The translations under genes and the position numbers were made by a program. Positions 41,141 to 44,864 of a stretch of 64,000 nt of DNA are shown here, piece after piece. The notes beneath the pieces were generated by a model. It was not told where the DNA came from. It made no database searches and worked only from the letters and a program-made list of their open reading frames with translations. Numbering within the stretch: position 1 is the stretch's first letter; every line of letters starts with the position of its first letter. The stretch lies in sequence record MK599315.1. One strand, written 5' to 3'.

Positions 41141-43006
41141 ATGATTCGTGATACCGAAACTCAAAACACTCAAGCTCAAGCCAACAACGCTCCGGCTCAA
41201 GCTGCTCCGCGCGCACAACAGGAAGCTCCTCGTATGCAACAAGCTGCACCTCAAGCTCTGCAAGGCGGTATTTCCGGCCTGCCGAACATGTTCAAACGTT
41301 CCGGTCGTACTGATGGCGGCGACGCCCGTGCGAGCGAAGCGCTGCAAGTAATGACCCGCGTTGGCAAAGATGCCATCGACCATCAAGACCTGGAAAACGA
41401 TTTCCAGATTCTGCGTTTCGACCGTGATGCCAACCGTGTTGGCTACTCCGCGCTGCTGATCGTCAAGCACGCTGCTGGTGGCAACGGTATCATCGTAGTT
41501 CGTCCGCTGATCATGCCGAACCCGGCAATCACCCTGCCTCCGCGTCAGGTTACCATTCAGAACGGCATGAGCCACGATCGCTTCGATGTAGACGTCGAAG
41601 TACAAGACGTATTCACCGTTCAGTACTGGAACCGCATCTGCGAATTCGTTCGTCAGACCACCGGTCGTCCGAAGGCTGAAGTACACCCGGCTGGCCCGCT
41701 GCCGATCCCGGCTGAATTCGATCTGAAAGACGAAGTCCTGCTGAAAGACATTCTGATCCGTTCCGTCAACCTGTGTGACGACGTTCTGGCTAAGAAAGCT
41801 GGCGAGACTCCGTTCCAGATCGCAATGCTGCGCGGCCAAGATGAAACCCTGGCTGCCAAGATGGACTTCTCCGGTCGTCCGGTAATGGACAGCGTCGGTA
41901 ACCCGATCAAGTCCGATATCGTGATCAGCCTGAACCGTACCAAGAAACAAGGTCAGCAAGAGAACGAGTTCTACGAAGCAGACACCATGCTGAACCAGGT
42001 GTCGGTACAAGTAACCCTGGAGTACACCCCCACTCCGCAAGCCCAGATGTTCGGTCAACAGACCCAACCGCTGCCGCCGTTCTCCCCGGCGATCCTGGTA
42101 ACCGACATTCGTCAGGCCAACTGGATCAAGGCAAACACTCTGGAACTGTACCTCTTCGCTCTGTCGAACGCCTTCCGCGTAACCGCTGGCCAGGCTTGGG
42201 CTCGTAAGTTCCTGCCTCAAGTTGGTAAAGTTAAAGACCTGGGTGACATCGGTGCTCTGGGTTGGCTGTCCAACCTGGGTAAGAAGATCGATACCAAGTC
42301 CGATACCTTCACCGATCAGAACTTCGCTGATCTGATGCTGAGCATGGTTCGTCCGAACCCGTCCTTCCTGATCGATCTGGATCGCATGGGCGACAACGCA
42401 GCACTGGACGTAATCTTCCTGGATGCCATGGGTGGCCCGAACCAACAGAAAGCTACTGCCGCGATCATTCGCGCTGTACAGAACCTGGTTGGTGGTGGCT
42501 TCGAGCGCTTCTTCGACTTCAACACTCAGCCGATCATTGCATCGACTGGCACTGAAGTGAACAAGGGCTACTACTGGGATGGCGACGAGAAACGTGACCG
42601 TCGTGACCTGGATGCACTGGGTGCACTGAACGCTGCTGAGGGCAACCAACAAGAGTGGATGTCCTGGTACGGTACTCAATGCAACCCGAACATCCATCCG
42701 GAACTGCGTAACAAGCAATCCAAGAACTACGACCGTGCGTTCCTGGGTGCTGTAACCTACACCACTCGTGCACATCGTGGTATCTTCAACCCGAAGTTCA
42801 TCGAGGGTCTGGATAAGGCGATTGCTGCTGCTGGTCTGACTGTAGCAATGGACAACGTTGCACAGGTCTTCGGTGCTCAGCGCTTCGTTGGCAACACCAT
42901 GATCCAAGACTTCGCTGTCGGTTCTACCGCACAGGTTGTCAACGGCATGGGCGTTGGTGGCGGCTACCAGATGAACATGGTAGGTTCGGTTGGTACTCTG
43001 TACTAA
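41141..43006 (+). CDS. chmA: Chimallin, major phage nuclear shell protein
   Basis: 621 aa; MIRDT..., GGDARASEAL, LRFDRD, QQENEFYE, GGGFERFFD and DGDEKRDRRDLD match 201phi2-1 gp105 / phiKZ gp54; lies upstream of nvRNAP beta'. Confidence 0.96.
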   Translation: MIRDTETQNTQAQANNAPAQAAPRAQQEAPRMQQAAPQALQGGISGLPNMFKRSGRTDGGDARASEALQVMTRVGKDAIDHQDLENDFQILRFDRDANRVGYSALLIVKHAAGGNGIIVVRPLIMPNPAITLPPRQVTIQNGMSHDRFDVDVEVQDVFTVQYWNRICEFVRQTTGRPKAEVHPAGPLPIPAEFDLKDEVLLKDILIRSVNLCDDVLAKKAGETPFQIAMLRGQDETLAAKMDFSGRPVMDSVGNPIKSDIVISLNRTKKQGQQENEFYEADTMLNQVSVQVTLEYTPTPQAQMFGQQTQPLPPFSPAILVTDIRQANWIKANTLELYLFALSNAFRVTAGQAWARKFLPQVGKVKDLGDIGALGWLSNLGKKIDTKSDTFTDQNFADLMLSMVRPNPSFLIDLDRMGDNAALDVIFLDAMGGPNQQKATAAIIRAVQNLVGGGFERFFDFNTQPIIASTGTEVNKGYYWDGDEKRDRRDLDALGALNAAEGNQQEWMSWYGTQCNPNIHPELRNKQSKNYDRAFLGAVTYTTRAHRGIFNPKFIEGLDKAIAAAGLTVAMDNVAQVFGAQRFVGNTMIQDFAVGSTAQVVNGMGVGGGYQMNMVGSVGTLY

Positions 43007-43010
43007 GAAA

Positions 43011-43325
43011 CAACTCCCCCGGTTGATAGGGGTGTCAGAAGGCTGGCATCCCGATTCAAATACTGCGACCCTGGTTCACTTCGGTGATAACGGTTAGGAG
43101 TAGGTTCCGCGAAGTAATCGACTAGTGGGCGTAAAGTCTAGGTCGACCTCTCGCTACACGGGTCGTGAGTGATCACTTAACCGAAAGGAGTTACTCTTGG
43201 GTAACGTGTGATCAAACAACGATGGATGGTAAAAGGTCCTAGTGCCAGAGTGCTACAGAGAAGAGCGGAGGTTAAGCTTTGTAGACGACGCTAGGATCGT
43301 GCCAGGCTCCGTTGGTGGTCCATCG
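43011..43325 (+). ncRNA. Candidate large structured ncRNA of unknown class, downstream of chmA
   Basis: At least 8 helices of 6-11 bp, C(UUCG)G and GAAA loops, two 7-bp loop pairings; no RBS-bearing ORF; ends at a strong terminator. Confidence 0.7.
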
Positions 43326-43330
43326 ATAGT

Positions 43331-43374
43331 AGATAAGGCGGCTCCTTCGGGAGCCGCTTCTATCTCCTTTTTTT
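43331..43374 (+). terminator. Strong intrinsic terminator ending the chmA-ncRNA unit
   Basis: AGATA-AGGCGGCTCC-TTCG-GGAGCCGCTT-CTATCT-CC-T7. Confidence 0.95.
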
Positions 43375-43398
43375 GTCGAGACATAATAGGAAGTAGGT

Positions 43399-44864
43399 AT
43401 GGGTCTATATGCTCAGGTTGTCAATCATGAGAGATGCTCGCTAACCAAAGAGGTAAAGTAGTATTCGCTAACGACTTTAATACCAGCAATGCTGAACAAA
43501 AGGAGGAATTCCAACGTTATCTGTTCTCCCATTATCAGGATGCAGATGCGATCGAGAACTCAGCTTCGTGTGACTGTGAGCATATCACAGAAGCATACAA
43601 GCTTGGGGTAATCTGCGATAACTGCGGTACACCAGTAGTAAGCACGAGCAACCGACCCATCGTCCCATCGATGTGGATTCGGGCACCGGAAGGGGTGGAT
43701 CGTCTGGTGAGTCCCGAGTTGTGGATTATGCTTTCAGGTTATATGTCGATGAAAGAATTCGACTTCCTGGAGTATCTGACCAACACCCAGTATCAGTACG
43801 ATTACGATACGATCAGTTCGAAGGAAACAAAACGGAAACTTGACAAGTTGCTGGCTCGCCAGTTCCCGCGTGGACTGAACAACTTCGTTCAGAACTTCGA
43901 TACGATCTTCCAGTTCTTGCTCGATAGCAGTATCATCAATACCAACAAAGGTGAGATGGCTGCATTCGTTAACCAGAATAAAGAACATCTGTTCCCGAAG
44001 AACATTCCGATCCCAACTAAACTCTGCTTCGTTGTAGAGTCTACGACCTCGGGTGTTTACATCGATAAGCCGATCGGCGCAGCAATCGATGCGGTACTGA
44101 CTATTAGTAGTATCGGTAGTTCGGCAATTCCGCTGAAACCAATCACTGTACAAAACCGTGTAGCTCGTGCACTGAAGCTTCTAGCTATCTTCCACGAGAA
44201 CTACGACAAACAACGAATTGCACAGAAACCCGGTTTGGTTCGTCGACATGTACTAGGTGGTCGTCTTAACCTGACTGCACGTGCAGTAATTACTTCTATC
44301 AGTGATCCGCATGATTACGATGAACTTCACATTCCGTGGGGTGTCGGTTGTCAGCTGTTGAAGTATCATCTGATCAACAAGCTCAAACGCAAATTCCGTA
44401 TGACGACTCGCCAAGCGAACTCGTTCATTTACGAGAACGTTCTGAAGTACAACGAAGTCATCGATCAACTGTTCAAAGAGATCATCGCGGAATCGAAGTA
44501 TAAGGGTCTTCCTTGTGTATTCCACCGCAACCCGACTCTGCAACGTGGTTCGACTCAACAGTTCTTCATCACCGTTATCAAGAATGACATTCGCGATAAC
44601 TCGATCAGCATGTCGGTCCTCTGTCTTAAAGCTCCTAATGCGGATTTCGACGGCGATCAGTTGAATTTGACGTTGATGCCCGATAACTATCTGGCTGATG
44701 CAACTGAACGAATCGCTCCGCATACTTGGGTACTGAGTCCTGATGATCCGCACGAGATCTCGGGTAACTTGGAACTACAAGGTCCGGTAGTAGAGACCAT
44801 CATCAACTATGCTCACGAGGACTATCTTCCGTCCTTGGAAGAATGGTTGGCGAAAGCAGCTTAA
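43399..44864 (+). CDS. Non-virion RNA polymerase beta' N-terminal subunit (phiKZ gp55-56.1-like), with an apparent 1-nt deletion near 43430
   Basis: Catalytic NADFDGD, Zn-finger CDC...CDNC, RNPTL. The conserved start MGLYAQVVNHE at 43399 is one base out of frame with the 43434 ORF. Confidence 0.93.

Follow-up and report, generated by a model that had tools for sequence, protein, structure and literature searches.

A conserved, three-domain folded RNA follows the chimallin gene of Pseudomonas phage PA1C

A folded non-coding RNA lies directly behind chmA

We analyzed a 64-kb stretch of the genome of Pseudomonas phage PA1C (MK599315.1), called the window hereafter, to which all positions refer. 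The 330 nt that follow chmA, the gene of the nuclear shell protein chimallin, are a real, conserved RNA folded into three domains, here termed M1, M2, and M3. This RNA is non-coding, modular, and patchily distributed. A folded non-coding RNA behind chmA had been proposed from the sequence alone (the original prediction), and shuffled controls, covariation, and the disruption of open reading frames (ORFs) all agree with that proposal. The minimum free energy (MFE) fold of the plus strand beats dinucleotide shuffles with a z score of -4.4, compared to -2.0 for the minus strand. We rederived the helices by comparing seven PA1C- and phiKZ-type sequences, in which 97.1% of cells pair, versus 33 to 41% when the partners are slid. 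Conservation and covariation in these relatives are strong, with 8 pairs changed on both sides in the 7 sequences. Moreover, 9 G:U pairs would become C-A mismatches on the opposite strand, indicating that the RNA is made from the plus strand.

The four small ORFs of the region all lack a Shine-Dalgarno sequence or ribosome-binding site, as had been predicted, and in close relatives they are disrupted by stops or 1- to 2-nt indels (seven relatives checked). On these grounds, we rejected a coding reading. Small "hypothetical proteins" are annotated at the chmA tail in HPP-Temi and, on the opposite strand, in Psa21 (gp057).

Searches for known families were negative. The 4227 models of Rfam 15 gave 0 matches in the whole window at the gathering threshold, and positions 42500 to 44000, searched at E values up to 10, returned only look-alikes of terminator hairpins and chance matches far below the cut-offs. 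The corresponding stretches of relatives (L002 to L005, L007, L010, and L093) had no Rfam match either, and no known riboswitch class was matched in Rfam. ARAGORN found 0 tRNA or tmRNA genes in the window, and the group I intron core (RF00028) was absent at E values up to 10 from the PA1C, phiHQ, and RP13 stretches. The prediction that the RNA is neither a tRNA, a tmRNA, nor a group I intron thus held, and the Infernal search suggested at the time as a possible refutation matched no family. A group I intron was also rejected because no gene is interrupted: chmA is complete (Pfam positions 1 to 627 of 627) and its stop precedes the element. Relatives without the element have identical gene ends at the gap between chmA and the polymerase gene. 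No paralogue of the element was found elsewhere in the window.

M1 is a four-way junction and M2 a small branched domain

The comparison gave the following structure for the first two domains.

43013..43170, plus strand: M1, four-way junction (covariation and PhiPA3 fold)
43018-21/43159-62, plus strand: M1 closing helix, with a C:G to U:A compensatory change
43013-16/43167-70, plus strand: extra closing pairs of M1, in PA1C and PhiPA3 only
43023-26/43056-59 and 43029-38/43043-52, plus strand: M1 arm 1
43061-64/43099-102, 43066-70/43092-97, and UUCG hairpin 43076-87, plus strand: M1 arm 2
43109-12/43151-54 (C:G to U:A) and 43118-30/43136-46, plus strand: M1 arm 3
43103-08 (GGUUCC) and 43155-58 (UACA), plus strand: invariant junction strands of M1
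43171..43213, plus strand: M2, stem 43171-76/43208-13 around CC-GAAA-GG (43181-88) and hairpin 43190-94/43201-05

M1 is a four-way junction, since covariation supports 43018-21/43159-62, 43061-70/43092-102, and 43109-12/43151-54. Within the PA1C and phiKZ types, compensatory changes fall in the closing helix, in arm 1, and in arm 3. The MFE fold of PhiPA3, obtained independently, has the same M1 junction, with compensatory changes in five helices and a greatly enlarged arm 3. The junction strands are identical in all three clades.

This arrangement differs in one helix from the original prediction, which had closed the first domain with 43065-71/43160-66. That helix forms in PA1C only and is broken in all phiKZ types; 65% of its cells pair, and it shows no covariation. 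The other proposed helices were kept in relatives, namely, 43029-38/43043-52, the C(UUCG)G hairpin, and 43118-25/43138-46 in M1; 43170-76/43208-14 and 43190-95/43200-05 in M2; and 43220-27/43318-25, 43235-44/43289-98, and 43253-60/43277-84 in M3. Several of them show compensatory changes.

M2 is a small branched domain, and M2 and M3 are separately closed. All 7 sequences keep the M2 pairs; in the inner hairpin, an A:U pair is replaced by G:C, and the stem GAUCAC/GUGAUC of PA1C reads GAACCAC/GUGGUUC in PhiPA3.

M3 keeps its loops while its stems turn over

Of the three domains, M3 has the strongest support.

43220..43325, plus strand: M3, long irregular hairpin (covariance model R1, covariation)
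43220-26/43319-25 (P1), 43235-44/43289-98 (P2), and 43253-60/43277-84 (P3), plus strand: M3 stems
43245-52/43285-88, plus strand: asymmetric internal loop
43261-76, plus strand: invariant 16-nt apical loop, AAGAGCGGAGGUUAAG
43302-18, plus strand: invariant 3′ strand, CCAGGCUCCGUUGGUGG

Across three lineages, 17 of the 27 nested pairs of M3 are changed on both sides, and 98.9% of cells pair. The covariance model R1, built from M3, matched downstream of chmA only, in PA1C-type phages, phiKZ-type phages, and the metagenomic phages L026, L030, and L091, whose chimallins are about 45% identical to that of PA1C. When PA1C is compared to L030, 51 of 56 unpaired positions are identical (91%), versus 22 of 54 paired positions (41%). 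Because the loops are fixed while the stems turn over, M3 is probably recognized by a specific partner or constrained by tertiary structure.

An 18-base gapped M3 pattern occurred in 52 IMG/VR stretches, of which the covariance model retained three chimallin-phage contigs only, and an exact-pattern scan of 185,579 bacterial and archaeal genomes found no copy of a 25-base M3 pattern. A metagenome scan by chimallin gave six loci, one of them with M3.

The M3 internal loop resembles a kink turn (GUG-CCA-GA.../...GA-CGC) in PA1C, SL2, PA7, and a unit inserted in PhiPA3. The first G position is an A in HPP-Temi and the L030 group, and the A position is a U in phiKZ. The loop between P2 and P3 (43242-43252/43285-43291) recurs with its flanking stems as an insert in arm 3 of PhiPA3 M1 (L002:1651-1706).

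Of two candidate pseudoknots, one is plausible

The original prediction described the RNA as doubly pseudoknotted, on the basis of two 7-bp complementarities that are indeed present:

43264-70 (AGCGGAG) with 43307-13 (CUCCGUU), plus strand: candidate pseudoknot 1 (PK1), 7 bp, -8.8 kcal/mol
43176-82 (CUUAACC) with 43270-76 (GGUUAAG), plus strand: candidate pseudoknot 2 (PK2), 7 bp, -6.6 kcal/mol

All PK1 and PK2 positions are invariant in 8/8 sequences, which for the PK1 strands span three lineages, and covariation therefore cannot speak to either pairing. When the loop was shuffled, a 7-bp partner still arose in 12% (PK1) and 52% (PK2) of trials, so that the double pseudoknot is unproven: the complementarities stand, but the chances of about 0.12 and 0.52, together with the lack of covariation, do not carry the description built on them. 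PK2 overlaps M2 helices; L091 retains GGUUAAG without M2, and L026 has GG-GAAG. We regard PK1 as plausible and PK2 as unsupported.

The element ends at a terminator 24 nt before a polymerase gene

The surroundings of the RNA are as follows.

41141..43006, plus strand: chmA coding sequence (ORF list; Pfam match)
43007..43374, plus strand: complete 3′ untranslated RNA, running past the chmA stop through the last U of the terminator tract
43331..43374, plus strand: intrinsic terminator, lower stem 43331-35/43361-65, upper stem 43338-45/43350-57
43375..44864, plus strand: spacer with ribosome-binding site, then the gene of the N-terminal part of nvRNAP beta′ (Pfam RNA_pol_Rpb1_2; frame comparison with relatives)

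The chmA product covers positions 1 to 627 of 627 of PF25677 (Chimallin_Phikzvirus) with 1101.8 bits. The strong terminator predicted at the end of the region is present, with the GC-rich hairpin and U run of a rho-independent terminator at 43331-43374. Its 8-bp upper stem holds 7 G-C pairs in PA1C, its loop is UUCG, and a U7 tract follows at 43368-74, as read from the sequence; its pairs are kept in 7/7 PA1C- and phiKZ-type sequences. It escaped a simple scan, as 10 nt lie between the upper stem and the U run. The same plus-strand scan found no terminator-like site at the chmA stop, as predicted, nor any before 43331. No sigma-70-like promoter was found on 43007-43330 in a scan without coverage of phage promoters.

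The conserved ATG of nvRNAP beta′, at 43399, follows the U-tract after only 24 nt. In the PA1C record, this conserved start (ATGGGTCT) meets a stop at 43459-61, and the long ORF runs from an ATG at 43434 to 44864; near 43429-31, PA1C lacks one base that HPP-Temi and phiHQ have. Either a sequencing error explains this frame break, or the protein has lost 12 N-terminal residues.

RNA modules are exchanged in the gap behind chmA

By blastn, the gap is 82 to 87% identical in about 50 phiKZ-type genomes. The alignment begins 15 nt ahead of the chmA stop and extends only as far as the polymerase start, indicating that the coding flanks are too diverged to align. The RNAs of PA1C and phiKZ are 84 to 87% identical, and the chimallins share 48.5% of residues. 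PhiPA3 has the closer chimallin (65.9%) and a much more diverged copy of the RNA, with two large insertions. This incongruence, together with the mosaics described below, argues for horizontal exchange on top of strong constraint.

In phiHQ, a PA1C-type phage, M2 and M3 are 98.5% identical to those of PA1C, and M1 is replaced by a different domain of about 310 nt, which we call family B. Family B is homologous to the chmA tail of Psa21, annotated there as a minus-strand hypothetical protein, and its core is homologous to an unannotated stretch in RP13, an unrelated phage of Ralstonia; this stretch stops 1 nt short of a tRNA-Leu gene. The three copies share a covarying pseudoknot:

L010:405-720: family B in phiHQ
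L007:4277-4580: family B in Psa21
L093:~1430-1597: family B in RP13

Family B had no Rfam match, and an exact 21-base pattern taken from it was found in IMG/VR in Psa21 only and in none of the genomes.

Other phages carry M3 alone (L026 and L091) or M3 with another module (L030). 201phi2-1, Viktualia, Phabio, and several metagenomic phages have other structured chmA tails of 83 to 240 nt. The element is absent from D6, from Noxifer and its relatives, and from the distant RAY, Goslar, and SA002, in which the gap between chmA and the polymerase gene measures only 78 to 105 nt (92 to 105 nt in RAY, Goslar, and SA002). The terminator hairpin and its tail are common to nearly all Pseudomonas chimallin phages, module-free ones included, and together with the module-free phages they indicate that the ancestral order was chmA, terminator, and polymerase gene. 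Recombination between the chmA stop and the terminator has since brought in RNA modules, removed them, and swapped them among phages. Because modules are swapped (phiHQ) or absent (D6, Noxifer, RAY, and Goslar), the element is an accessory, horizontally exchanged cassette. The suggestion that it might be an RNA component of the phage nucleus system did not survive this comparison: it is missing from many chimallin phages and mosaic in phiHQ, and the RNAs are far more alike than the chimallins.

Small protein genes are also found in the gap of Phabio, 201phi2-1, and Viktualia (L003:4265-4898, L004:4265-5138, and L005:4268-4948); in 201phi2-1 and Viktualia, they sit after the first terminator. 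Since these gaps carry protein genes, the region between chmA and the polymerase gene is a general hot spot for RNA and protein cargo. A hairpin with a conserved 18-nt loop, ACCUAAAUACUGGNUAAA, recurs behind chmA in two metagenomic phages as well as in 201phi2-1 and Viktualia:

L004:4300-4340, L005:4300-4345, L018, and L019: hairpin with the ACCUAAAUACUGGNUAAA loop, candidate module

The distant chimallin phage RTH11 of Xanthomonas has a 230-nt gap (L097:3142-3371). In Goslar, an Intron_gpI is annotated directly after the first polymerase ORF past chmA (L096:4409-4722). This annotation indicates that group I introns of chimallin phages are detectable in principle and that they occupy the same gene neighborhood in this phage family.

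A proposed protein-binding RNA on the chmA message and its alternatives

We tentatively favor the reading that the element is an abundant, stable, protein-binding RNA carried on the 3′ untranslated region (UTR) of chmA and recognized at its invariant loops and junctions; ChmC is the one candidate partner backed by any data. It would form the untranslated tail of the chmA transcript up to the first terminator and would be made in large amounts by riding on the strongest early/middle transcript. Its stability would come from the compact fold and the terminator hairpin. A specific partner would recognize the invariant loops and junction strands, and the RNA may act either as part of the chmA mRNA, on the handling, export, stability, or translation of that message, or once released from it. 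Co-transcription with chmA, stability, and partner binding are thus what we infer. For phiKZ, Wicke et al. assigned PHIKZ054 to an operon of six genes (gp54-59) and mapped early as well as middle start sites upstream of PHIKZ054 (PMC8244752). As start sites are reported only upstream of the gene and no plus-strand terminator precedes 43331, the element is probably part of the chmA transcript. The higher identity of unpaired than of paired M3 positions (91% versus 41%) and the invariant M1 junction strands argue for specific recognition rather than bulk structure.

ChmC, a nucleus-associated RNA-binding protein, is the only candidate partner with an experimental hint, and a role as ChmC ligand was among those listed in the original prediction. 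According to Enustun et al., its enhanced cross-linking and immunoprecipitation (eCLIP) coverage peaks between chmA and gp54 in PhiPA3, in the gap where we located the M1 and M2 homologue. The expectation that nothing had been described was therefore nearly right: peaks have been reported in PhiPA3, but the RNA itself was never characterized. Another ChmC eCLIP peak region of PhiPA3, gp203-gp204, is unrelated in sequence to the element, and the element is described neither in a 2026 review nor in transposon screens.

Several points weigh against the reading that we favor. Enustun et al. describe ChmC as having little sequence specificity, and high eCLIP coverage could reflect only an abundant stable fragment. 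Since PhiPA3 has no recognizable M3, the ChmC eCLIP says nothing on this domain. The first helix begins 7 to 12 nt past the stop codon, so near that terminating ribosomes would disturb it. The covariation comes from few independent lineages (three for M3 and three for M1 and M2), in an alignment fitted to the model. Finally, the differential RNA sequencing (dRNA-seq), Grad-seq, and ONT-cappable-seq studies of phiKZ and 201phi2-1 do not describe the element.

The patchy distribution invites a different explanation, namely, a trans-acting decoy or sponge that, after export or processing, titrates a host factor such as an RNA-targeting defense protein, a ribonuclease, an RNA-binding protein, or the 30S subunit. 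We consider it somewhat unlikely, and the same holds for its corollary of an RNA "moron" helping infection in some hosts only. It would suit an accessory element whose identity between PA1C and phiKZ (84 to 87%) is out of step with that of the chimallins (48.5%, and 65.9% for PhiPA3), whose modules are shuffled as in phiHQ, and whose slot also gathers protein genes in 201phi2-1, Phabio, and Viktualia. Expression from the earliest abundant transcript and the Shine-Dalgarno-like AAGGAG and GGAGGU in the M2 and M3 loops point the same way. However, the exact-pattern scan of bacterial genomes found neither a copy nor a mimic, the GGA motifs lie mainly within helices, and binding of a phage protein would suit the same evidence. 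Two more specific ideas looked weak: the match to a type I-F CRISPR repeat, which the RNA might mimic, is only 7 nt long, and an RsmA/CsrA sponge would need GGA motifs that here are mainly paired. The 3′ end of 16S rRNA would be another, speculative object of mimicry. The RNA could instead act purely in cis and without a specific partner, as a compact structure by the terminator that blocks 3′-to-5′ exonucleases and endonuclease entry and so prolongs the life of the chmA mRNA. ChmA is needed in very large amounts, a module sits immediately upstream of the terminator in every phage having one, and unrelated structured modules of 83 to 475 nt occupy the same slot, most of them beating shuffles (z scores of -1.6 to -5.9). 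Nevertheless, such a stabilizer would not hold loops of 16 to 20 nt invariant while the stems turn over, many chimallin phages manage with the terminator alone, and family B also adjoins a tRNA gene, away from chmA; this explanation is therefore unlikely. M3 itself is built like an aptamer, with a closing stem, conserved internal loops, and a possible pseudoknot between loop and strand.

M3, with or without M1 and M2, might act on the polymerase or sense a ligand or protein, as a riboswitch-like or put-like antiterminator or attenuator that sets passage into nvRNAP beta′. M3 ends 5 to 12 nt upstream of the terminator, the nvRNAP beta′ start follows 24 nt past the U-tract, and GGCUCC of the M3 3′ strand equals the terminator 5′ arm. 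From the 24-nt spacing and the reported gp54-59 operon, it follows that the polymerase subunit must be made largely by read-through. Control at this step is decidedly unlikely, though, since M3 and the terminator coexist in the MFE structure, which offers no antiterminator that would exclude either, and the candidate pairings found by eye are short and, by inspection, not retained in the L030 group, GAGCGG/CCGCUU between loop and terminator among them. In addition, no known riboswitch class was matched, several unrelated modules occupy the slot, and module-free relatives keep the same terminator. A degenerate or novel self-cleaving or group-I-like RNA, that is, a ribozyme or selfish mobile RNA spreading among co-infecting phages, would explain the horizontal exchange and mosaicism as well as the complex multidomain folds with invariant cores, and group I introns are common in nearby polymerase genes (Goslar annotation; PhiPA3 gp65-66 intron). 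Yet no Rfam ribozyme or intron matched, even at E values up to 10 on short stretches, chmA is complete with no gene interrupted, and no homing endonuclease or other mobility gene is attached, which makes this possibility very unlikely. Strands of family B may resemble group I P/Q elements. Finally, the hypothetical proteins annotated in HPP-Temi and Psa21 would fit a small protein gene, and a DNA-level signal (a promoter, origin, or packaging site) is conceivable; both are extremely improbable given ORFs that have no ribosome-binding site and are broken in close relatives, compensatory pair changes and G:U pairs valid on one strand only, and the absence of a sigma-70-like promoter in the scan, which had no coverage of phage promoters.

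It is also improbable that M3 (possibly with M1 and M2) represents a regulatory RNA class that is new and confined to nucleus-forming phages, with invariant loops read by phage transcription or export machinery (nvRNAP, vRNAP, or ChmC) or by a small ligand. If so, such an RNA would govern how much shell protein is made relative to RNA polymerase, or would tag the chmA mRNA for export and localized translation at the nascent shell, and the cassette would spread horizontally because of this ratio tuning.

Significance and comparison with known systems

Work on the phage nucleus takes phiKZ and PhiPA3 as its reference models. Although the transcriptomes of both have been mapped repeatedly, a 330-nt RNA with riboswitch-grade conservation has stayed uncharacterized behind the most-studied gene. 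It can be mutated, and it bears on how early mRNAs are handled, exported, and stabilized where transcription and translation are separated, on recognition by ChmC, and on the expression of the polymerase subunit behind the terminator. With respect to RNA cargo, the gap behind chmA is a hot spot of recombination, and it may offer phage engineering a natural high-expression insertion site. If the element is merely a stabilizing tail, the result is a modest one, a new RNA family for catalogues.

The RNA is undescribed as a family, and its general kind, the structured phage RNA borne on a 3′ UTR, is known. The 3′-UTR-derived non-coding RNAs (ncRNAs) reported by Putzeys et al. and Gerovac et al. 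(PAK_P3 ncRNA1/2 and the PHIKZ298 fragment of phiKZ) likewise lie downstream of a coding sequence, have no start site of their own detected, use the terminator of the gene, and are structured and conserved among close relatives. The element differs in being three to four times longer, in its three domains and four-way junction, in covariation across phage genera, and in the exchange of its modules, and it was not reported in those studies.

As with lambda sib retroregulation and 3′ stabilizer hairpins, the lifetime of the mRNA could depend on its structured 3′ tail; those, however, are single hairpins defined by stem geometry, whereas here the loops are most conserved. Like riboswitches and antiterminator RNAs (HK022 put and EAR), it has a conserved aptamer-like fold directly before an intrinsic terminator that precedes an essential gene, but it matches no known class, shows no conserved alternative antiterminator pairing, shares its slot with unrelated modules, and is optional. 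The group I introns of jumbo-phage RNA polymerase genes are multidomain RNAs of similar size (with pseudoknots, which are only candidates here), lie in the same neighborhood, and move horizontally; unlike them, the element interrupts no gene, has no Rfam intron match, and comes with no endonuclease gene. GOLLD and ROOL often adjoin tRNA genes. They resemble the element in being big, intricate, phage-borne RNAs with conserved loops, covarying stems, and a function that is not known, and family B, its sister, adjoins a tRNA gene in RP13. In contrast to GOLLD and ROOL, the chmA-linked RNA has no match in Rfam 15, is smaller, and is embedded in the 3′ UTR of an mRNA.

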